A stretch of DNA of 64,000 bases from Hyalangium minutum (GCF_000737315.1 NZ_JMCB01000010.1:62001-126000); one strand, 5' to 3'. Counted from the stretch's first letter, positions 23,556 to 56,141 are shown. A program made the numbers and translations. The notes: generated from the sequence alone by a model not told the origin.

Positions 23556-25300
23556 CGCCCCGCCTCCAGCAGCTCACGCCCCACGCGCCGCAGGCCCTCG
23601 GCGTCCAGCCCCAGCTCCGCGCGCTGCACCCGTGCATCTCCATGCGGAACGAAGGTGTCCGGCATCCCCATCAGCCGCACGCGCGGCGAGCGCCTGTGCA
23701 CCGCGTACAGCTCCAGCACCGCGCTCCCCAGCCCTCCCCGCGTCGTCCCTTCCTCCGCCACCACCACGTTTCCGCAGGCCGCAGCCTCCAGCAGCGCCGG
23801 AGCATCCAGCGGGCTCACGGACCGCGCATCCAGCACGCTCCACCCAGGCTCTGCTCGCGCCGCCGCCAGCGCAGCCAGCCCCAGCGGCCCCAGCGTCACC
23901 AGCGTGAGGCGCGGCGCCTCCGCTCTCAGCAGCCAGCGCGCACCCTGAATCGGAGCCTCCCCGGGGCTCAGCTCGGACGGCACGGCAGGCAGGGTGCCTC
24001 GCGGGAAGCGGATAACTGTGGCCCCCTGGGCCTCCAGCGCCGTGGCCAGCATGGGAGCCATGTCCTCACCCACCACCGGCGCCATGATCGACAGCCCCGG
24101 CAACGCACGGAGCGAAGAGACGTCATACGTGCCCTGGTGCGTGGCCCCGTCCGCGCCCACCAGCCCCGCCCGATCCACCGCGAAGACGACGGACAGCCCA
24201 GGCAGGCACACGTCGTGGATGACCTGATCGTACGCGCGCTGGAGGAACGTGGAGTAGATGGCACAGACGGGCCGCAGGCCTACGGCCGCCAGTCCCGCGC
24301 AGAAGGTGACAGCGTGCTGCTCGGCGATGCCCACGTCGTAGACACGGTCCGGGTAGCGGAGCTTCAGGTCCACCAGCGCGGAGCCCTCCAGCATGGCCGG
24401 AGTGACGGCCACCACGCGCTCATCCCGCGCCATCGCATCCTCGAGCGCTGCGGCGAAAGCCTCGCTGAAAGTGCGCTGGCCTCCGCGCGAGCGCACCAGC
24501 TTTCCATCACGCCACTCGTATGGGCCCATGGCGTGGCCGCGCGTCTGCGTGTCCGCCTCAGCGGGCGGAAAGCCCCGGCCCTTCTGCGTCAGCGCGTGCA
24601 CCACCACCGGCCGAGACGAGGCGCGGGCCTCCCGCAACGCCGCAATCAGTGGCTCCAGCGCATGCCCATCCACCGGGCCCAGGTACGTGAAGCCCAAACC
24701 CTCGAAGAAGCCTCGAGCCTCGCGGGTCCGCAGCAGCGCGGGAATGGCGCCCACGTTGGCGGAGATGGACATCTGGTTGTCGTTGAGCACCACCACCAGC
24801 GGCAGCGGCGAGCCGCCCGCGTTGTTGAGGCCCTCGAAGGTCAGCCCGCCCGTGAGCGCCCCATCCCCCACCACCGCCACCACGTGGCTCTTGCGCCCCT
24901 GCAGGCGCCAGCCCTCGAGCATCCCCAGCCCTGCCGACACCGCCGTGCACGCATGCCCTGCCGCGAGCGGATCATGCGGGCTCTCGCGGGGATCCAGGAA
25001 CGGAGCAATGCCCCCCGCCTGCCGCAGCGAGTTCATGCGATCGCGCCGCCCGGTAAGCAGCTTGTGCGCGTACGCCTGGTGGCCCACGTCGAAGAGGATC
25101 GCGTCCTGGGGCGAGTGGAACACCCGGTGCAGCGCCACCACCAGCTCCACCGCTCCGAGCGAGGCGCCCAGGTGGCCGCCCACCCGCCCGCAGATGTTGA
25201 TGATGTCGTCGCGCAGCTCCTCGCACAGGCGCGGCAGCTCCGCCTCGGGCAGGGCCCTCACGTCCACGGGCCCTTGGATGCCCGGGAGGAGTGGTGTCAC
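23552..25300 (-). CDS. dxs: 1-deoxy-D-xylulose-5-phosphate synthase (short form)
   Basis: GTG 25300 overlaps the ispA stop; GGHLGASLG, FDVGHQAYAHK, GDGALTGG...NDN, IAEQHA, DRAGLVGADGATH. Confidence 0.95.
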   Translation of the reverse strand: MTPLLPGIQGPVDVRALPEAELPRLCEELRDDIINICGRVGGHLGASLGAVELVVALHRVFHSPQDAILFDVGHQAYAHKLLTGRRDRMNSLRQAGGIAPFLDPRESPHDPLAAGHACTAVSAGLGMLEGWRLQGRKSHVVAVVGDGALTGGLTFEGLNNAGGSPLPLVVVLNDNQMSISANVGAIPALLRTREARGFFEGLGFTYLGPVDGHALEPLIAALREARASSRPVVVHALTQKGRGFPPAEADTQTRGHAMGPYEWRDGKLVRSRGGQRTFSEAFAAALEDAMARDERVVAVTPAMLEGSALVDLKLRYPDRVYDVGIAEQHAVTFCAGLAAVGLRPVCAIYSTFLQRAYDQVIHDVCLPGLSVVFAVDRAGLVGADGATHQGTYDVSSLRALPGLSIMAPVVGEDMAPMLATALEAQGATVIRFPRGTLPAVPSELSPGEAPIQGARWLLRAEAPRLTLVTLGPLGLAALAAARAEPGWSVLDARSVSPLDAPALLEAAACGNVVVAEEGTTRGGLGSAVLELYAVHRRSPRVRLMGMPDTFVPHGDARVQRAELGLDAEGLRRVGRELLEAGR

Positions 25301-26190
25301 GAGTTCCGCTCCAGCACGTAACGCGCGATCACCGACAACGGGCCTCCCGCACCCTCCAGCGGCTCCACGGCGGCCACGGCGTCGGCCACCTTGCGCTCGG
25401 CCAGCATCCACGAGGCCTCCAGGCCGATCACGGCCGGGTACGTGTGCCGGCCCGCCGCGGCGTCCGCATGCACGGGCTTGCCCATCTTCTCGGGGGTGCT
25501 GATCACATCCAGGATGTCGTCGGCGATCTGGAACGCCAGCCCGATGGAGTCGCCGTAGGTGTCCGCCCGCTGGAGCGCGTCCGCATTCCCGCCCGCGGCC
25601 AGCACGCCCATGCGGCACGCGGCACGAATCAGCGCGCCCGTCTTCAGGCTGTGCATGCGCGACAGGTAGTCGATCTGCGCGGGCCGATCCTCGGCGATGT
25701 CCAGCACCTGCCCGCCCACCATGCCTGCGGAGCCAGCGGCCACGGCCAGCTCGCGGCAGAGCGCGCCCCGCACCGGCTCCGGTCCCGAGGCCAGCACGTT
25801 GAAAGCCTCCGTGAGCAGCGCATCGCCCGCGAGGATGGCCATGGCCTCGCCGAACACCTTGTGCGAGGTGGGCCGCCCTCGGCGGTAGTCGTCATTGTCC
25901 ATGGCGGGCAGGTCGTCATGGATCAGCGAATAGGTGTGGATGTACTCGAGCGCGCACGCGGCGTCATCGGCGGGAGACAGCGAGCCGCTCTGCTTGCGCA
26001 CGGAGTCCGAGAACACCAGGCAGAGGATGGGGCGCAGGCGCTTGCCGCCGGCCAGCAGCGAGTAGCGCATGGCCTCGGCCAGGCGCGGCGGCGTGCCCGT
26101 GGACTCCAGCCGGTTGGCGCGCGAGAGCAACAAGCTCTCCACCCGCGTCTGCTGCACACTGAGGAAGTCTTTCAGGTCGAAGGTACTCAC
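25297..26190 (-). CDS. ispA: Polyprenyl (farnesyl/geranylgeranyl) diphosphate synthase
   Basis: GGKRLRP, HTYSLIHDDLPAMDNDDYRRG, KTGAL, FQIADD. Confidence 0.93.
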   Translation of the reverse strand: MSTFDLKDFLSVQQTRVESLLLSRANRLESTGTPPRLAEAMRYSLLAGGKRLRPILCLVFSDSVRKQSGSLSPADDAACALEYIHTYSLIHDDLPAMDNDDYRRGRPTSHKVFGEAMAILAGDALLTEAFNVLASGPEPVRGALCRELAVAAGSAGMVGGQVLDIAEDRPAQIDYLSRMHSLKTGALIRAACRMGVLAAGGNADALQRADTYGDSIGLAFQIADDILDVISTPEKMGKPVHADAAAGRHTYPAVIGLEASWMLAERKVADAVAAVEPLEGAGGPLSVIARYVLERNS

Positions 26191-26195
26191 GGGCT

Positions 26196-26591
26196 TCAGT
26201 GCTCCTCCGGCACCGGGGCCGGAACCGGGACCAGCTCACGTATACGCGCCAGCAGCTGGTTGAGATCCAGCGGCTTGACGAAGTAGTCCGCTGCCCCCGC
26301 CTCCAGCCCCTTGCGCCGGTCCTCCGGCTCTCCGCGCCCGCTGACGAACACGACGGGGATGTCCCGGAAGTGGGGGTTCTTCTTCACGGCCTTGCACAGC
26401 TCGAAGCCGTCGATCCAGGACATGTTCACGTCCAGGAGGATGAGGTGCGGGCGGTGCAGCTCCAGCGAGGAGATCAGCCGCAGGCCATTGGCCGCGCTCG
26501 ACACCTCGAAGCCCTCGGTCTCCAGGGCCAGGGCGAGCAGCTCCCGCGTATCGCGATCGTCATCGACGATGATGATTCTGGGCTTTTCCAT
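26196..26591 (-). CDS. Single-domain response regulator
   Basis: IVDDD, LLDVNM (phospho-Asp), FVSG, VKP; no output domain. Confidence 0.93.
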   Translation of the reverse strand: MEKPRIIIVDDDRDTRELLALALETEGFEVSSAANGLRLISSLELHRPHLILLDVNMSWIDGFELCKAVKKNPHFRDIPVVFVSGRGEPEDRRKGLEAGAADYFVKPLDLNQLLARIRELVPVPAPVPEEH

Positions 26592-26614: not shown

Positions 26615-26938
26615 TCAGAATGGAACATCGTCTTCTGGAGGAGGCTTGTTCGCCGTGGCCTTGGGGGCAGCCGCGGGCGCGGGCCGGTTCCCCACCGACA
26701 ACGGGGCCACGGTGTCCCGGCCCTCCTCGTCCACCAGGAGCTGCTCGATGCGCTGCTCGGCCTCGTTGAGGAGCTTCTCGCCCTTGCGGACCAGACGGAT
26801 GCCCTCCTCGAACGCCTTGAGCGACTCCTCGAGCGACAGCGAGCCGCCCTCCAGCTTCGCCACCATCTCCTCCAGGCGCGCTACCACGTCCCCGTACTGC
26901 TCGGGCGCTGGCTCCCCTGCCTTGGCTGCCTTCGACAC
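26615..26938 (-). CDS. xseB: Exodeoxyribonuclease VII small subunit (copy 1)
   Basis: GTG 26938 with GGAGGT RBS; LEEMVAKLEGGSLSLEESLKAFEEGIRLVRKGEKLLNEAEQRIEQL; extended tail ending EDDVPF. Confidence 0.95.
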   Translation of the reverse strand: MSKAAKAGEPAPEQYGDVVARLEEMVAKLEGGSLSLEESLKAFEEGIRLVRKGEKLLNEAEQRIEQLLVDEEGRDTVAPLSVGNRPAPAAAPKATANKPPPEDDVPF

Positions 26939-27021: not shown

Positions 27022-28773
27022 TCAGCAGTCGACCGGACCCTTGATGGCGGTCACCGTGGCCTCGATCTCCTCACAGCCCTCTAACGTCTTTGCCCCGGCA
27101 CTGGCGAGCCTGATGCCGAGCAACTCGCCCGGCTGCACATCTCCCACGGTGCGCACCACCGCCCCATCGCGCTTGCGGAAGGTTACAGCGTACCCACGGC
27201 CCATGACCTTCAGCGGACTCATCGCATCCAGGCGGACAGCCAGGCGCTGGAACCGCTGCTGGGCCTCCGAGAGGGCCTGCCGCTGCAGGGCCTCCAGCCG
27301 GGACTTCTTCTCGGCCAGCTGGGCCCGCTCGGCCGCCACCCGGGCCGCCGGAGAGGCCCGCTGCAACCCGAGCTCCCCTCTGGCCAGCTCCGCCCGCCGG
27401 GTGGTGATGCTCGCGCGGGCCGCTTCCTGGAGCCGCGCCGCCAGCTTCAGCAGGTTCGCGCGCTGCTCCCCGAGCCGGGCCTGGGGCCGTGCCCGCTGGA
27501 GCCGCTCCTGCAGCCCTCGCAGCTTCTCGCGGCGCTCGCGCTGGGCGGGCCGGAGGGACCGCATCATCAGCTCGAGCTGTTCGGAGAGGAACAGCCGCTC
27601 CTGCCCCATGCGCCGCCGGGGATCCACCAGCCGCCCGGCCAGGCTGCCCAGCCGCTCGCGCAGCTCCGACTGCCGCCGCATCACCGCCTGGCGCAGCCGC
27701 GAGCCATGGGTGGCCAGCGTCAGCTCCAGGTCGCTCAGCACCGGCGAGAGCCGCTCCGCCGCCGCGCTGGGCGTGGCCGCGCGCCAGTCCGCCACGAAGT
27801 CCGCGATGGTGAAGTCGATCTCGTGGCCAATGGCCGACACCACCGGCACGGGCGAGGCGTGAATCGCCCGCGCGACGAGCTCCTCGTTGAAGGTCCAGAG
27901 GTCCTCCACCGAGCCACCGCCGCGCGTCACGACGATGACGTCCACGTCCGTGTGGCTCAGGCGCTCGAGGGCGTTGGCCACCTCCAGCGCCGCGCCATCG
28001 CCCTGCACGCGCGCGTCGGCCAGCAGCACGCTCAGCCGGGGGTTGCGCGAGTGCAGCACGCGCAGGAAGTCCTGGAGCGCCGCGCCGGTGCGGCTCGTCA
28101 CCACGCCGATGCGCCGGGGCAGGAACGGCAGCGGGCGCAGCGGGCGGATGCGCCGGTCTCCAATCAGCCCCTCGGCGGCCAGCCGCTCCTTGAGCTGCTC
28201 GAAGGCGAGCGCGCGAGCGCCCTCCCCCACCGGCTCCAGCTTGCTGATGATGAGGCTGTAGCGACCCTGGGGCGCGTAGACGTCCACGCTGCCCTCGGCC
28301 ACCACCTCCAGGCCATCCCGCAGGGCAAAGCGCAGCCGCCCCGCCTGCGAGGCCCACACCTTCGCGTCGATGCAGGCGTCCGCATCCTTCAGGGTAAAGT
28401 ACAGGTGGCCTCGGGCGTTGGCGCCCCGGAAGCCGGACACCTCACCTCGGACGAGCACGCGCGGGTAGCGCGCCTCGATGGTCTCTTTGAGCTGCCGCGT
28501 GAGCTCGCCCACGGACATCACCGTGCGCGAGGGCCGGATCGGAGCGCCAGGCAGTGACGCCAGCGGCACCGACACCTCCTGCACGGGGGCGGGCCGCTCC
28601 ATAGCCACGGGCCGCTCCACCTGAGAAACCCCCAGGGGAGCCTTCTCCGGGGCCGGGGGCGGCTTGGGCGGAGCCACGGCAGCCGGAGGCTTGGGCGCCT
28701 CGGCGGCGCCAAAGAGATCCCCCTGCACAGTGGCAGCGGGGATCTCCTCACCCGCCTTGCGGCGCTTCTTCAT
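27022..28773 (-). CDS. xseA: Exodeoxyribonuclease VII large subunit (copy 1)
   Basis: VRGEVSGF...GHLYFTLKD OB fold; VVTSRTGAALQD, RGGGSVEDL, SAIGHEID, ATPSAAAE; long coiled coil; about 85-aa N-terminal extension. Confidence 0.96.
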   Translation of the reverse strand: MKKRRKAGEEIPAATVQGDLFGAAEAPKPPAAVAPPKPPPAPEKAPLGVSQVERPVAMERPAPVQEVSVPLASLPGAPIRPSRTVMSVGELTRQLKETIEARYPRVLVRGEVSGFRGANARGHLYFTLKDADACIDAKVWASQAGRLRFALRDGLEVVAEGSVDVYAPQGRYSLIISKLEPVGEGARALAFEQLKERLAAEGLIGDRRIRPLRPLPFLPRRIGVVTSRTGAALQDFLRVLHSRNPRLSVLLADARVQGDGAALEVANALERLSHTDVDVIVVTRGGGSVEDLWTFNEELVARAIHASPVPVVSAIGHEIDFTIADFVADWRAATPSAAAERLSPVLSDLELTLATHGSRLRQAVMRRQSELRERLGSLAGRLVDPRRRMGQERLFLSEQLELMMRSLRPAQRERREKLRGLQERLQRARPQARLGEQRANLLKLAARLQEAARASITTRRAELARGELGLQRASPAARVAAERAQLAEKKSRLEALQRQALSEAQQRFQRLAVRLDAMSPLKVMGRGYAVTFRKRDGAVVRTVGDVQPGELLGIRLASAGAKTLEGCEEIEATVTAIKGPVDC

Positions 28774-30521
28774 CGCTGGATCTTGTCGAGCCAGGTCTGC
28801 GCCTTCTGGTGGGTCTCGTCATCCGCCGGCGTCATGGCGATCACCTCCCGGAACTTCGGGGCGGCGTCCTCCGGGTTGGCGTCCTTGAGGGCGTACGCCT
28901 GGAGGTAGAGATCCTTCGCCTTCTGGCGCAGCTCGGTGAGGATGTTGCTGGCGCCGGCGTGGCCGGGGTCCGCCTGGATGGTGCGCTTGGCGTACTCCAC
29001 CGCGCGAGCCCACTGGCCAGCGGCGCGGGCCGCCGAGGCGCTCTTGTAGAAGATGTTCGCCGCGCGAGTGCCGGCGTTCCTGGCCATCTTGCTGGGGCCG
29101 CGCGAACCGGAGATTTCCTTGTCCAGCGCGAGCAGCCGGGCCAGCCCCTTGGCGTCCAGGTCCTCCATCTTCTTGTAGAGGTTGCCGAACTCCGTCATGT
29201 CCTTGAGCATCTCCTTGCACTTGGGCTTGGAGACGCACGCATTGGCCAGCGCCACGGCGCCCGACAGATCGCCGTCCACGAAGCGCGCGGAGGCCTGCTC
29301 CCAGGGCGGCGCGGTGGGAGGCGGCGGAGGCGGCGCCACCGGCGTGTCACGGATGCGGATGAGGCGCACGGCCTCCTCGTTGATGAGCTTGCCGTCGCGG
29401 CTCTCCGGGTAGATGGCGAGCACGTCGTCGGAGATGGCCTTGGCCTGATCCAGTTGCTTGTTGTCCAGCAGCGTCCGGGCCACCTTGGACTGAGCGTCGG
29501 CGGCGTCCTGCAGGCCGCGCTTGAGCGCGTTCACCTGCTCGAACATCGTCGTCTCGGCGGTGATCTTGTCCACCTCGGACTTGGCCAGGGCCAGCTTCTT
29601 CTCCGCCAGCGCCGCCTGGGCCGCCTTGAGGTGCTCCTGGTTGGGGATCTCCTTGTCCACCTGCTGCAGGTAGTCCGACAGGCCCGGGTAGTCCGCCGCC
29701 AGTGCCTGCAGTTCCAGCAGCTTCGACTTGGCCTCGGTGTAGCGGCCCTCGCGGATGTGGTTCTTGGCATCCTGGAACATGATGGCCAGCGCTTTGCGCT
29801 GCTCGGCGTTCAACTGCTGCTCGGCGATGAGCCGCTGGCGCTCCTTCTCCTTGCCAGACTGAATCACCACGAGCCCCGCGATCAGTACGACCGCCATCAC
29901 GCCGCCGCCGATCATCATCATCTTCCGCTTCTTCAGCGTCGCCGGATCGACTTCCTTCTTCGCCGCGCGCCCAGGCCGCACGCGCTCGGGCCGGCCGGGC
30001 CGCACCGGCGCGCCACCACCCCCGGGAGAGGGCGCACGAGAACGAGCCGAGGCGGCGCTCGCGGTGATGTCCACCATCATCGTGGCGTTGGACACGTCGG
30101 TGTACGTCACCTCGGTGTCGCCCATGGTGATGATGTCGCCGTTGGCCAGCACCGTCTCGTCGGTGATCTGCTCACCATTGACGAGCGTGCCGTTGCCCGA
30201 GCCCAGATCGCTCACCGTCCAGCCATTGCCCACGCGGCGCAGCGAGATGTGCTTGCGCGAGACAGAGGTGTCCTGGATGCAGATCGGGTTGTCCGTGGAG
30301 CGCCCGATGACGTACTCGTCGTCCTCGAGCTGGAACTCCTCACCCTCCTTGGGCCCCGCGGTGACGACCAGCTTGGGACCGTTGTAGGGCAGCGGTGCCG
30401 AGCGGACCGCTGGAGCAGTGGTCCCGGTCTTGCGCACGGGCCGGGACGAGCCCGAGCCCGAGGGAGGTCCACCCGAACCAGCAGAGGTGGGACGGCGTCG
30501 TGCCGGAGGAGAGTTCGCCAT
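28770..30521 (-). CDS. FHA domain + TM + periplasmic TPR protein (Kil cluster 2 accessory)
   Basis: VIGRS...DTSVSRKH...DLGSGNGT intact FHA motif; one TM helix; helical/TPR C-terminus. Confidence 0.88.
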   Translation of the reverse strand: MANSPPARRRPTSAGSGGPPSGSGSSRPVRKTGTTAPAVRSAPLPYNGPKLVVTAGPKEGEEFQLEDDEYVIGRSTDNPICIQDTSVSRKHISLRRVGNGWTVSDLGSGNGTLVNGEQITDETVLANGDIITMGDTEVTYTDVSNATMMVDITASAASARSRAPSPGGGGAPVRPGRPERVRPGRAAKKEVDPATLKKRKMMMIGGGVMAVVLIAGLVVIQSGKEKERQRLIAEQQLNAEQRKALAIMFQDAKNHIREGRYTEAKSKLLELQALAADYPGLSDYLQQVDKEIPNQEHLKAAQAALAEKKLALAKSEVDKITAETTMFEQVNALKRGLQDAADAQSKVARTLLDNKQLDQAKAISDDVLAIYPESRDGKLINEEAVRLIRIRDTPVAPPPPPPTAPPWEQASARFVDGDLSGAVALANACVSKPKCKEMLKDMTEFGNLYKKMEDLDAKGLARLLALDKEISGSRGPSKMARNAGTRAANIFYKSASAARAAGQWARAVEYAKRTIQADPGHAGASNILTELRQKAKDLYLQAYALKDANPEDAAPKFREVIAMTPADDETHQKAQTWLDKIQR

Positions 30522-30552
30522 GGGAATTCACCACTTCTCTTAGAGAGCACGA

Positions 30553-30558
30553 ATTATA
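30553..30558 (-). promoter_or_regulatory. Perfect TATAAT overlapping the upstream gene's stop; possible internal promoter
   Basis: TATAAT about 32 nt upstream of ATG 30521; no clear -35 found. Confidence 0.3.
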
Positions 30559-32251
30559 GCGGAAGCTCGTACTCGGTCGCCTTCTCTATTGCCAGATTGT
30601 GGCAGCGATGTTCAGTCGTAGGGAAGCGCCGGATAACCTCTTGCACGGTCGCTAGGGCCTTATCCCCGTCCCGGTATTGAATGCTGCGTTGGAAATCGAG
30701 CATCAACTTCCGGCACGTCTGATCCATCTCCCCTGCTGTGCGAGCAAGCATGTACCGCACGTCCTCGTACAGGTCCTCAGGCTTACGCTCCATGGCCTCC
30801 AGGGTGATCCAGGAGGAGCGGAACAGCTTCCACGACTTGTAGAGGTTCTCGGAACCTACATCCTTCTGCTCGTAGAAGCGGCGGGCCGTGGCCGCTTCCT
30901 TGTTCGCATTGGCCATCAGCTGCGCCTGGGGCAGCTCCGGTACGGGGATGACCTCCACGTACACGTTCCACACCCGCCACCGGTCCTCGGCGGGAGGGTT
31001 GAGCACGTTGTCGAAGGTGACCCGATTGGTTTCCCCGCGGCGCAGCATCGCCAGCGGGAGCAGCAGCTGCAGCTCGCGCTCCTCCGACTCCTGGCTGTCA
31101 GTGGGCACCCAGCCCAGGTCCACGCCGTTGAGGCTGATGCTCACCTCGCGCGACTGGGAGATGTCCCGCGCCTGGTAGTGTAGGACAGCCAGCGCCCGGG
31201 TAGGTGAAGCGAACTGGAACTCGAAGCCCTTCGCGTCCGGCTGCTTCCAGGTGACGCCATCGCCCAGGCCGAAGGAGTCCGAGACAGGCGAAGCCCCCAG
31301 CTCGGTGGGCTCGGGTCCCGAGGGCCTCGCGGGCCCCTTCACCGACCGGGTCGAGCTGAGCAGCCCCAGCACCACCATCAGGATGAACAGTCCCGTCACC
31401 ACGCCCGCGACGGCGCGGAGCCTCGGAGGCAGCTCCCGCCACTTCACCAGGAGCTGGCCCTGGAGGGAGGTCATCTGCTGGCGGCGGAGCCGGGCGCGCT
31501 CGGCGGCGGATGGAGCCGTGGCCTTCGGGGAGGCCTTCATGTTGACCGTGGAGACGTCCGTGTCTCCCGTCGCGTCCAGGGGCGCGGCAGCGGCCTTCGC
31601 GAGCTGCGCGGGCATGCGGATCACCGTGGGGATCGGCATCTCGGCGATCGTCGCTGGCGCATGGAGCGCCCGGGGAGCGTTGATGGCGGTCGCTTCCGAA
31701 GGCGCCTGGGACTCCGGCCCCGGCTTGTTGAGGACCGTGGCCATCTCGAAGTCGGAGAAAGCGCTCGAGGCGGCGCCCTTGGGCAGCGGAGCCAGCACGG
31801 ACATCTCCGGGAGCGTGCGAAACCGGCCGGTGTCCTCCGACTCGATGGCCTGCATCTCCTGCTGAGTCTCCGCCCGGGTGATGAGGGTACTCGAGCGGCC
31901 GCGCTTGCCCAGCGGCGGAGCCGGAACTGCTGGGCGCTCCTTCTCCGTGGGATTCAGGGCAGTGAAAAGGAACTCGATCGGCCCGACGGCGAGCCGATCG
32001 CCGCTGCGCAGCTCGTGCTCCTTGTCGCGAGCGAGCGGCTTGCCGTTGACGGAGGTGCCCTTGGCGCTGCCCAGATCGATGACGTAGTGCCTGCCGCCAC
32101 GCGAGAGGATGCGCGCATGGCGGCGGGACACGCCTTGATCGTGCAGCACCACATCGTTCTCCGAGGCGCGGCCGATCTGGATCTCATCATCCTCGAAGGT
32201 GATCTCGCGTCCTTCCTGGATCCCCTTCGAGATGGCCAGCCTGAACCCCAG
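30554..32251 (-). CDS. FHA domain + TM + periplasmic protein, probable CTG start
   Basis: The FHA fold (GFRLAISKG...IQIGRASENDVVLHDQGVSRRH) begins upstream of the first canonical start (GTG 32152). In-frame CTG 32251 lies 6 nt after GGAGG. Confidence 0.82.
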   Translation of the reverse strand: MGFRLAISKGIQEGREITFEDDEIQIGRASENDVVLHDQGVSRRHARILSRGGRHYVIDLGSAKGTSVNGKPLARDKEHELRSGDRLAVGPIEFLFTALNPTEKERPAVPAPPLGKRGRSSTLITRAETQQEMQAIESEDTGRFRTLPEMSVLAPLPKGAASSAFSDFEMATVLNKPGPESQAPSEATAINAPRALHAPATIAEMPIPTVIRMPAQLAKAAAAPLDATGDTDVSTVNMKASPKATAPSAAERARLRRQQMTSLQGQLLVKWRELPPRLRAVAGVVTGLFILMVVLGLLSSTRSVKGPARPSGPEPTELGASPVSDSFGLGDGVTWKQPDAKGFEFQFASPTRALAVLHYQARDISQSREVSISLNGVDLGWVPTDSQESEERELQLLLPLAMLRRGETNRVTFDNVLNPPAEDRWRVWNVYVEVIPVPELPQAQLMANANKEAATARRFYEQKDVGSENLYKSWKLFRSSWITLEAMERKPEDLYEDVRYMLARTAGEMDQTCRKLMLDFQRSIQYRDGDKALATVQEVIRRFPTTEHRCHNLAIEKATEYELPL

Positions 32252-54238: not shown

Positions 54239-54538
54239 CTACTTGGCGTCATCTTCGTCGGTTCCGGGGTCAGGGGCTTCACGCTCGAGTTGCTCGGCGA
54301 TGGTCCTCACCTGCATCTCCGCCGCTTGGATCTTCCCGCGGCAAAGTGTCACGAGCTCGGCGGCTTCCTTCACCAGCCCGGAGAGCGCGTCGACGTCGAC
54401 CTCGCCTTCCTCGATCTCCCGCAGGATCGCCTCCAGACGTGACGCAGCCTCACCATAGGAAGGCTCGCTCGTCGACCGCTTCTGCTTCGCCATGTCCCCG
54501 CCAGGAGCCTTCTTCATCGAGTGCTTGGACTTTGCCAT
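54239..54538 (-). CDS. xseB: Exodeoxyribonuclease VII small subunit (copy 2)
   Basis: SYGEAASRLEAILREIEEGEVDVDALSGLVKEAAELVTLCRGKIQAAEMQV. Confidence 0.9.
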   Translation of the reverse strand: MAKSKHSMKKAPGGDMAKQKRSTSEPSYGEAASRLEAILREIEEGEVDVDALSGLVKEAAELVTLCRGKIQAAEMQVRTIAEQLEREAPDPGTDEDDAK

Positions 54539-54542
54539 ACGC

Positions 54543-56141
54543 CTATTTCTTTTCCGGTCCTTCCGAGCGAAGCCTCAACGCGCCCAGCTTCAACTCGGCC
54601 GAGAGCGTGGTTCCGCTGGGAGCATGTGCTGGATCCTTGAGGACCGCCCCCGTCTCCGTGCGCAAGATGGCATACCCGCGCTCCACCACGCGCCGTGGAT
54701 CCAGGAGGAGCAGGAGCCGCCCGCGCGCTTCGACGCGCTCGCTTTCGCGCACGAGGTGCCTGGAGGCGCTCCGGCCCAGCCGAGAAGCGATCTCGTCGAC
54801 TCGACGCGACGCGGAGGAGAGGTCGCGCCCCGCGCCCAGGTGGAGCCGCCGAGCCGCATCCTGAAGAGTCCGAGTGCTCTGCTCGAGCAAGTCATTGGCC
54901 ACGAGTGGGATCTGGCGGGCCTGCTCCTCGAGTTCCGACGAGGTGCCCTCGAGGATTTCCCTGGCGTGCTCGAGAATCCTTTCCAGGCGCGATTCGATCA
55001 CCTCCCGGGCCTCCAGGACGCGCTCGACGAGCAGGCCGGCCGCCGCTGTTGGGGTCTTGGCTCTCCAGCCCACGAAGTCGAGCAGAGACATGTCCCGCTC
55101 ATGGCCGATTCCCACCACGACCGGAATGGGGAATGTCGCGATCGCCCGGGCGATGGCCTCCGAGTCGAACCAGGCGAGATCCGTCCGCGAGCCGCCCCCC
55201 CGGCAGATGAGCAGAACATCGAACTCCCCGGCATGGGCTCGGAACCAGTCCAGCGCATTCAGGACCGAGGGCTCCGTCTGTCGTCCCTGGACACGCGCGC
55301 CATGAACCATGACATCAAAGGCGAGCCCAGACTCTTCCAGCGTACGCAGCACGTCATGGTAGGCATCCGAGTTCAGGCTCGTCACGAGGCCCACACGCAT
55401 GGGCAGCAGTGGAAAGGGCAACGCGCGGTTCCGCTCGAGGAGTCCCTCCTCGGCAAGTCGTCGGCGAAGCTCCTCTTGTCGCCGGGCGGCCTCTCCCAGC
55501 GTGTAGTTCAGGTCGAGATCCTCGATCACGAACTGGTACGAGCCCCATGGGACGTAGAGATCGACGCGCCCACACACCCTGATCTGGATTTCGTCCTCGA
55601 GTTGAAAGGGCGCTCCCGCCTGGGCGAGCCGGTCCTCCAGCTCTCGCAGCGTGCGCCCGAAAAGGACCGCCTTGAGCCTGGAGGACTCCTTTCCCCACGC
55701 ATCTCGCTCGACGAGCTCGAAGCCGACGACGCTCCTGTGCCGGGCCTTGTTGAACCCGGAGATCTCCCCCACGAGCCACAGGGAGTTCGGAAATGCCCTT
55801 TGGATCGCCCCTTGGACCTTCTCATTGAGCTGAGAGACGGTGAGGTCGGTCGCCGCTCCCAGCTGCCTCGGTGAAGCACCAGGCTCGCGCCCATTCGTGT
55901 CGAGGGCGAGCTCACCGCCGCGTTCACGATACAGGCGCCGCGTGTTCTCGCAGAAGTCGAAACCCTCTGCGTGCAGTTGGTCCACCACCGCCACCACGTT
56001 CTTCTCGGGAACCGACCAGTATTTTTCGGTGCCGTTCCAGTGGCGGGAAGGGAGCGCTTTGACGACGTCCACGAGCCTGCGATCGAAAGGGAAGCGGATC
56101 TGGAGCGTCCCGAGACTGTCGTTGGTGACCCGCCGACTCAT
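54543..56141 (-). CDS. xseA: Exodeoxyribonuclease VII large subunit (copy 2) with an N-terminal HARP-like domain
   Basis: WLVGEISGF OB fold, VTSLNSDAYHD, RGGGSRTDL, GIGHERD, KTPTAAA, VERGYAI; extra residues 12-63 resemble HARP. Confidence 0.9.
   Translation of the reverse strand: MSRRVTNDSLGTLQIRFPFDRRLVDVVKALPSRHWNGTEKYWSVPEKNVVAVVDQLHAEGFDFCENTRRLYRERGGELALDTNGREPGASPRQLGAATDLTVSQLNEKVQGAIQRAFPNSLWLVGEISGFNKARHRSVVGFELVERDAWGKESSRLKAVLFGRTLRELEDRLAQAGAPFQLEDEIQIRVCGRVDLYVPWGSYQFVIEDLDLNYTLGEAARRQEELRRRLAEEGLLERNRALPFPLLPMRVGLVTSLNSDAYHDVLRTLEESGLAFDVMVHGARVQGRQTEPSVLNALDWFRAHAGEFDVLLICRGGGSRTDLAWFDSEAIARAIATFPIPVVVGIGHERDMSLLDFVGWRAKTPTAAAGLLVERVLEAREVIESRLERILEHAREILEGTSSELEEQARQIPLVANDLLEQSTRTLQDAARRLHLGAGRDLSSASRRVDEIASRLGRSASRHLVRESERVEARGRLLLLLDPRRVVERGYAILRTETGAVLKDPAHAPSGTTLSAELKLGALRLRSEGPEKK

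Follow-up and report, generated by a model that had tools for sequence, protein, structure and literature searches.

Bacterial genome maintenance has two general hubs for recruitment, the C-terminal tip of SSB (SSB-Ct) and the beta clamp. In the usual view the partner enzymes carry the pocket and SSB carries the peptide: a protein that is recruited by SSB evolves a pocket, whereas a carrier of the peptide is instead recognised by the proteins that recognise SSB. The SSB-Ct is recognised through the side chain and the alpha-carboxylate of its last Phe, which are bound by a hydrophobic pocket and a basic residue, and through its Asp residues, which are held by a basic ridge; the Pro-to-Ser change of ssb113 disrupts the binding (PMC3159472). 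B. subtilis XseA, the large subunit of exonuclease VII (ExoVII), co-purifies with SSB, and its foci are lost when the C-terminus of SSB is deleted (PMC3000357). E. coli ExoVII is an XseA4.XseB24 complex (PDB 8TXR) with six XseB subunits per XseA, the C-termini of which are disordered and exposed on the stalk; the autoinhibited enzyme opens once DNA is bound (PMC10835039). A precedent for a non-SSB enzyme with a tail like that of the cognate SSB is found in phage T7, where the helicase-primase gp4 and the SSB gp2.5 use the same docking site on the polymerase, and the gp4 tail peptide DTDF on T7 DNA polymerase (PDB 6P7E) is the template for the gp2.5 tail (PMC12339929).

Here we describe an ExoVII small subunit, XseB1, that ends in an SSB-type tip. 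It is encoded in a stretch of 64 kb from Hyalangium minutum, which we call the window and which carries two xseA/xseB pairs (Table 1). The first pair belongs to a run of minus-strand genes in the order FHA-domain membrane protein (28770-30521), xseA1, xseB1, receiver, ispA (25297-26190), dxs and TlyA-like methyltransferase. This makes the locus similar to that of E. coli ExoVII, with the same two gene families, the same xseA-xseB-ispA-dxs neighbourhood and the same predicted XseB hairpin. The xseB1 gene lies 69 bases downstream of xseA1 on the same strand, and the xseA-xseB order is the same in related loci wherever xseA is readable. Directly upstream of xseA1 there are two genes for FHA-domain proteins, each with a predicted transmembrane segment (28770-32152, minus strand); the stop codon of the nearer gene overlaps the xseA1 start codon (ATGA), and this gene is found in synteny with xseA1 in almost all loci with a tailed XseB. 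The small subunit of the second pair, XseB2, has an acidic C-terminus (...GTDEDDAK) without the Pro-Phe tip. The N-terminal domain of XseA2, of about 100 residues, weakly matches the HARP domain (PF07443) of annealing helicases, with a score below the threshold (E 0.0025).

Table 1. Features of the two ExoVII loci in the window, with residues counted in the encoded protein
Feature	Position	Strand	Basis
xseA1, exonuclease VII large subunit, 583 aa, partner of XseB1	27022..28773	-	PF02601 E 1e-101; PF13742 OB fold
Q-G-D-L-F of XseA1, residues 17-21, beta-clamp-binding-motif-like	28711..28725	-	likeness to the consensus; ortholog conservation
Pro/Ala-rich N-terminal linker of XseA1, residues 22-85, from the clamp-like motif to the OB fold	28519..28710	-	sequence; orthologs
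xseB1, exonuclease VII small subunit, 112 aa	26615..26953	-	ORF list; Pfam PF02609; named orthologs
Helical-hairpin core of XseB1, residues 20-76	26726..26896	-	AlphaFold2
Pro/Ala-rich predicted-disordered linker of XseB1, residues 77-106	26636..26725	-	composition; AlphaFold2
C-terminal tip E-D-D-V-P-F of XseB1, residues 107-112	26618..26635	-	translation; ortholog conservation; same hexapeptide on OB-fold SSBs
TGA stop making Phe112 the free C-terminus	26615..26617	-	DNA; orthologs stop at the same place
Single-domain response-regulator receiver, between xseB1 and ispA	26196-26591	-	Pfam
xseA2, 532 aa	54543-56141	-	PF02601 E 2e-66
xseB2, 99 aa	54239-54538	-	PF02609 E 1e-11

XseB1 matches the Pfam family Exonuc_VII_S (PF02609) over residues 24-71 with E 2.3e-17 and 63.2 bits (cutoff 24), and orthologs at 86-90% identity carry the name exodeoxyribonuclease VII small subunit. 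The open reading frame is listed with a GTG start; the orthologs suggest that the true start is perhaps a few codons downstream. AlphaFold2, run with an alignment of 30 sequences, predicts two helices at residues 20-36 and 41-76 with pLDDT above 90, a fold like the helical hairpin of E. coli XseB (PMC10835039). This hairpin core is the part that grips the XseA stalk. The C-terminal part after the hairpin (residues 77-112) has no predicted secondary structure, and the block-mean pLDDT over residues 71-112 is 52-66. Within it, residues 77-106 read EGRDTVAPLSVGNRPAPAAAPKATANKPPP and include 7 Pro and 7 Ala in 30 residues (47% Pro+Ala). The last 12 residues of E. coli XseB are also disordered, but that protein has 80 residues and neither a long linker nor a Pro-Phe terminus.

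The minus strand of 26615-26650 is read as AAC AAG CCT CCT CCA GAA GAC GAT GTT CCA TTC TGA, i.e. N K P P P E D D V P F stop. Codons and peptide are thus as the sequence-only reading had written them, its linker of roughly 30 Pro/Ala-rich residues is an accurate description, and its name XseB1 is justified because of the second xseA/xseB pair at 54239-56141. In the tip, four codons out of six have A or T in the third position (GAA, GAT, GTT, CCA) despite the 68% G+C of the window, which looks like drift rather than a signal, since orthologs mostly use G/C-ending synonyms. Across the six frames of the 64-kb window xseB1 is the only open reading frame that ends in [ILVMF]PF-stop, and a search of the DNA with the degenerate pattern for [DE]DDVPF-stop gave one match, compared with 0.00 expected from shuffles.

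The tip is conserved in the Myxococcus/Archangium lineage. Relatives were collected by a word-indexed search, which gave at least 120 proteins, and separately by a GTDB scan with one genome per species, which gave 80 loci. Among the matches listed in the first search, the closest ~60 belong to Hyalangium, Stigmatella, Corallococcus, Pyxidicoccus, Myxococcus and Myxococcaceae MAGs and nearly all terminate in E[DE]DVPF, and no tail is present on the shorter XseB (72-80 residues) of other Deltaproteobacteria-like lineages. Untailed XseB in the GTDB scan come from Syntrophales, Nitrospiria, Oceanospirillum, one Polyangia MAG and one low-GC Cystobacterineae MAG. Conservation was counted over 58 of the 80 species-level loci, those in which XseB is complete and its tail ends in [VI]PF. 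In this set F at position -1, P at -2 and D at -4 are each present in 58/58, V occupies -3 in 55 and I in 3, and the residue at -5 is acidic in 55/58, that at -6 in all 58. The dependence of the claim on ortholog conservation had been spelled out in advance, and all 58 complete tailed orthologs retain D-[V/I]-P-F-COOH behind a divergent linker. The tip codons vary synonymously among these loci (GTT/GTC/GTG; CCA/CCG/CCC/CCT; TTC/TTT), and the stop codon at the same position is TGA, TAG or TAA across the orthologs. Over the 58 XseB the mean pairwise identity amounts to 0.87 in the tip (six residues), 0.71 in the helical core (58 residues) and 0.31 in the linker, which is 26-58 residues long with 44% Ala+Pro.

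Judged by this pattern, the tip is under strong purifying selection. An invariant short motif that ends a drifting disordered linker is, at the level of sequence, the signature of a functional short linear motif, and the tail of SSB has the same architecture. On this conservation pattern we reject chance or artefact as the origin of the tail.

Outside this lineage tailed XseB are found as well. The sequence-only reading had proposed a survey of XseB C-termini for SSB-like endings. When 1.84 billion cluster representatives were searched exhaustively with a profile, 19,123 XseB-like proteins were found at E up to 0.001, and about 70 of the best 150 of these bear tails ending in [DE]x[DE][VIL]PF. 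These ~70 represent distinct 50%-identity clusters; V, I and L all occur at -3, which are the alternatives found in SSB tips. A separate XseB subgroup ends in ELPF (alignment A2). The search with the alignment of this subgroup revealed 112 new proteins (P0263-P0374), 108 of which end in ELPF, mostly as GEGELPF or SAGELPF. The few of the ELPF-tailed XseB that have organism names are from Candidatus Eisenbacteria/Eiseniibacteriota. In Eisenbacteria the XseB gene (L203, 6001-6390) stands in the order xseA-xseB-ispA...dxs-nadK-recN, and the tip of the protein is a strict ELPF with only one or two acidic residues. As tailed XseB are found in at least two distant lineages, they are not peculiar to one family.

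Two tailed XseB relatives, P0060 and P0068, have an insertion of 27 residues in the hairpin loop (alignment A1, columns 50-76) with two CxxCxGxG repeats (e.g. VPCKACDGTGTIDGHSCTSCGGQG), resembling the zinc-finger repeats of DnaJ.

The idea that the tail has no specific function, being a tolerated low-complexity extension or the product of annotation or read-through, is hardly credible to us in view of these data. Pro/Ala-rich low-complexity extensions are indeed common in high-GC genomes, and a few database entries are frameshifted or fused versions of XseB (P0054, P0141 and P0144, the last of which reads as an XseB-receiver fusion). However, such an extension does not account for four end residues that are invariant or nearly so in 58 species against synonymous codon turnover, three different stop codons and a drifting linker, nor for the recurrence of the tip in so many distinct clusters.

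The next question is whether the tip is of the SSB type. By sequence it has every feature on which recognition of the SSB-Ct depends, namely the terminal Phe with its free carboxylate, the penultimate Pro, the upstream acidic residues, a hydrophobic residue at -3 and a variable, predicted-disordered linker. As in the E. coli SSB-Ct (...MDFDDDIPF), the hydrophobic-Pro-Phe-COOH ending follows three acidic residues at the extreme C-terminus, and as in bacterial SSBs generally the tip follows a disordered, low-complexity linker whose length and sequence vary; by analogy with E. coli ExoVII, the tip of XseB1 would also be expected to be presented many times over on an elongated assembly, as it is in bacterial SSB. 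The differences are Val instead of Ile/Leu at -3 and the Pro/Ala-rich composition of the linker.

A scan of viral contigs for [DE]DDVPF followed by TGA gave at least 120 matches. All 120 of the matches listed are ends of open reading frames, usually after Pro/Ala/Gln-rich stretches, and 35 of the 120 are OB-fold SSBs (phmmer against E. coli SSB, E down to 7e-51), several of them with a typical SSB core of the alphaproteobacterial type. These SSBs end in DDDVPF or EDDVPF, i.e. in a hexapeptide identical to the XseB1 tip. Since the same hexapeptide terminates viral OB-fold SSBs, DDVPF is a natural variant of the SSB tip, and the likeness of the XseB1 tail to that tip, on which the sequence-only reading was built, is borne out. 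Among the non-SSB viral proteins with the same ending are five SF2 helicases of the DEAD/ResIII type (L097, L114, L131, L190, L198), one DnaB-like helicase (L105) and one Gp3-like protein (L113). Because viral helicases end in DDDVPF, SSB-type tips do exist on replication proteins other than SSB. Many of the [DE]DDVPF-ending viral proteins (loci L081-L200) have about 200 residues and no Pfam match.

XseB1 itself is not an SSB as judged from its predicted fold, which is a helical hairpin and not an OB fold, and shares with SSB the tail alone. Unlike in SSB, the carrier of the tip is a nuclease subunit with no recognisable SSB similarity: phmmer over all open reading frames of the window gave only noise between XseB1 and E. 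coli SSB (E 2.2). No SSB gene was found in the 64-kb window, the 80 related loci or phage Mx8. To see whether V and I tips are interchangeable in one host, we also searched E. coli genomes for a VPF-tipped, E. coli-like viral SSB and found no match there; among annotated phage SSBs the closest are those of Salmonella phage S9-5 and Xanthomonas phage PBR31, which end in DDDIPF.

One property of the XseB1-type tips might point away from SSB partners. Position -3 is nearly fixed as V (55/58), in comparison with I/L in the canonical SSB tips compared, such as those of E. coli and of phages. This could mean a distinct partner. We regard it as unlikely that the tip docks a lineage-specific partner outside the SSB interactome, such as the adjacent receiver protein or another myxobacterial factor, its SSB likeness being convergent. 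Both in the window and in loci of the crown Myxococcaceae/Archangiaceae the response regulator is indeed encoded by the next gene after xseB1. However, it is missing in many deeper tailed loci (L030, L034-L040, L043, L045-L049 and others), so that the receiver protein is an improbable partner of the tail. The upstream FHA/TPR-like protein was also considered as the tail receptor and rejected, as a transmembrane segment separates its FHA domain from the weak TPR-like part; by its inferred topology this part is probably outside the cytoplasm, because it lies beyond that segment. A partner of this kind is further at odds with the presence of the same tip on bona fide SSBs and with the same class of tip having evolved, or been kept, in an unrelated lineage at phylum level.

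The partner subunit XseA1 carries a second terminal peptide. XseA1 is similar to E. coli XseA (8TXR_A, E 2e-75), with a helical stalk that is ~41 residues longer, and the two are aligned only from XseA1 residue 82; E. coli XseA therefore has no counterpart of the N-terminal extension of XseA1. The N-terminal 85 residues of the latter are Pro/Ala-rich and begin with MKKRRKAGEEIPAATVQGDLFG, and the linker within them is variable in length and sequence among orthologs. The consensus of beta-clamp-binding motifs is QL[SD]LF or Q-phi-x-[LM]-[FL], and the internal motif of Pol III alpha is QADMF (bioRxiv 10.1101/2025.08.20.671105). The QGDLF peptide of XseA1 lies near a chain terminus in a putatively disordered region, a setting that is usual for such motifs. 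It differs in having Gly in the aliphatic position 2, as is usual for these XseA peptides, whereas the QADLF of several orthologs fits the consensus fully and resembles the peptide of Pol III alpha.

Q[GA]DLF is found in 47 of the 49 scorable XseA that adjoin a tailed XseB and is absent from 15 of the 16 that adjoin an untailed one, so that 47 loci have both tail and motif, 15 have neither, two have the tail and one the motif alone; this co-occurrence is not independent statistical evidence, because it may stem from a single ancestor. As for the two loci with a tail and no motif, the XseA reading frame of one runs off the start of the locus (L065), and in the other (L012) XseA is part of a stop-to-stop reading frame of 1,190 residues, the N-terminal region of which is unaligned. 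Every XseA that is readable to its start and adjoins a tailed XseB has Q[GA]DLF[GS] near the N-terminus (QFDLF in two divergent loci), followed by the variable linker, and XseA adjoining untailed XseB begins directly at the OB fold. Both peptides are kept across a lineage whose XseB cores have diverged to ~45% identity. Eisenbacteria XseA (455 residues) has neither the N-terminal extension nor the clamp-like motif; the tail can therefore exist without it, and the two peptides are not an obligatory pair. From these sequence comparisons the clamp-like peptide of XseA1 and the tail of XseB together seem to wire ExoVII into the DNA-repair hubs.

Many of the more divergent myxobacterial XseA (loci L029-L067) have a second motif, P-A-W-R-[RK], just before the OB fold; XseA of Myxococcus, Archangium and Hyalangium have LPSLPGAPxRP in its place.

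We infer by analogy with the E. coli enzyme that the most likely function of the tail is that of a multivalent docking peptide of the SSB-Ct type along the ExoVII stalk. XseB1 is on this view an ordinary ExoVII small subunit with an acquired flexible tail, made of the disordered Pro/Ala linker and the acidic Pro-Phe-COOH motif. With six or more XseB per XseA stalk and four XseA per holoenzyme, two dozen or more tips would decorate a rod of ~50 nm; homology and the longer stalk suggest that the myxobacterial enzyme exposes ~24-32 tails. Each tip would dock in an SSB-recognition pocket, with its hydrophobic pocket, basic residue and basic ridge. To the partners of SSB, ExoVII-1 would in this way look like SSB, and it would be physically coupled to one or more of them, for example to a helicase that feeds it single-stranded DNA. 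In parallel, QGDLF on the N-terminal extension of XseA1 would tether the complex to a beta sliding clamp left on DNA.

As to where the tips dock, we tentatively prefer the SSB-Ct pockets of other genome-maintenance proteins, which ExoVII-1 would bring along or by which it would be brought; on the sequence features above, the chances of this reading seem to us nearly balanced. It is preferred because a carrier of the peptide is recognised by whatever recognises SSB. The T7 precedent is only partly comparable: the T7 tails are acidic and end in Phe but have no Pro-Phe signature, and gp4 is a phage helicase with one tail per hexamer subunit, not a nuclease accessory subunit with a long array.

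Since B. subtilis XseA is itself an SSB-Ct partner (PMC3000357), the pocket filled by the tails could also lie inside ExoVII; the recruitment or sequestration of repair proteins put forward in the sequence-only reading would fit this fact no better. The tips would then act as pseudo-ligands within the complex, bound either to an SSB-Ct site of XseA, which the B. subtilis data make plausible, or to the OB fold or DNA channel of XseA as a mimic of single-stranded DNA, and would keep the enzyme autoinhibited until SSB-coated or free single-stranded DNA displaces them. We consider this the main alternative, although a rather less likely one. Regulation of this kind, by a protein's own acidic tail, is known for SSB, T7 gp2.5, T4 gp32 and Hfq, and the acidic C-terminal domain of Hfq reportedly mimics nucleic acid. 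Such mimicry by an acidic C-terminus is documented for gp2.5 (PMC12339929), and the autoinhibited state of E. coli ExoVII, which opens on DNA (PMC10835039), also fits this arrangement, as do the OB fold of XseA and the very high local concentration that six or more tails per XseA would produce. However, charge and an aromatic residue are what a pure DNA mimic requires, not an invariant hydrophobic-Pro-Phe, the GELPF tip of Eisenbacteria is barely acidic, an SSB-Ct site has been mapped on no XseA, and 6-8 tails per XseA would be wasteful for a single site. The strict hydrophobic-Pro-Phe ending, together with the barely acidic ELPF of Eisenbacteria, favours recognition by a pocket over a generic polyanionic DNA mimic.

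We add a more speculative view, which we hold to be unlikely: docking on other proteins could go as far as making the XseB-coated stalk a protein imitation of an SSB-coated single strand. A rigid rod with 24-32 tips, anchored to the clamp by the XseA peptide, would assemble helicases and restart and recombination mediators round the nuclease independently of single-stranded DNA, and the idea would have arisen more than once, with VPF in myxobacteria, LPF in Eisenbacteria and the tips of phage helicases.

Neither an SSB-like tail on XseB nor the peptide DDVPF was described in the literature searched, and the same holds for an ExoVII-clamp interaction and for a clamp-binding motif on XseA. Searches on SSB tip mimics, on XseB in Myxococcus and on Myxococcus SSB returned nothing relevant. 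The paper on the E. coli ExoVII structure does not mention SSB (PMC10835039), and the part of the ETfinder paper on SSB C-terminal heptapeptides available to us has no myxobacterial data. The parts are known, i.e. an ExoVII subunit, a motif of the SSB-Ct type and a motif of the clamp-binding type; it is their combination that is not.

Last but not least, the usual division of roles is reversed at this locus. Here a nuclease carries the SSB-type peptide, under clear selection and in at least two distant lineages, and by inference in many copies. If the tails bind SSB partners, ExoVII would be a hub in its own right. The enzyme requires single-stranded ends, and such binding would open a way to study its coupling to helicases in the repair of protein-DNA crosslinks, in mismatch excision or in fork processing. 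Should the tails bind to ExoVII instead, the autoinhibited state of the E. coli structure would have its first known regulatory element.
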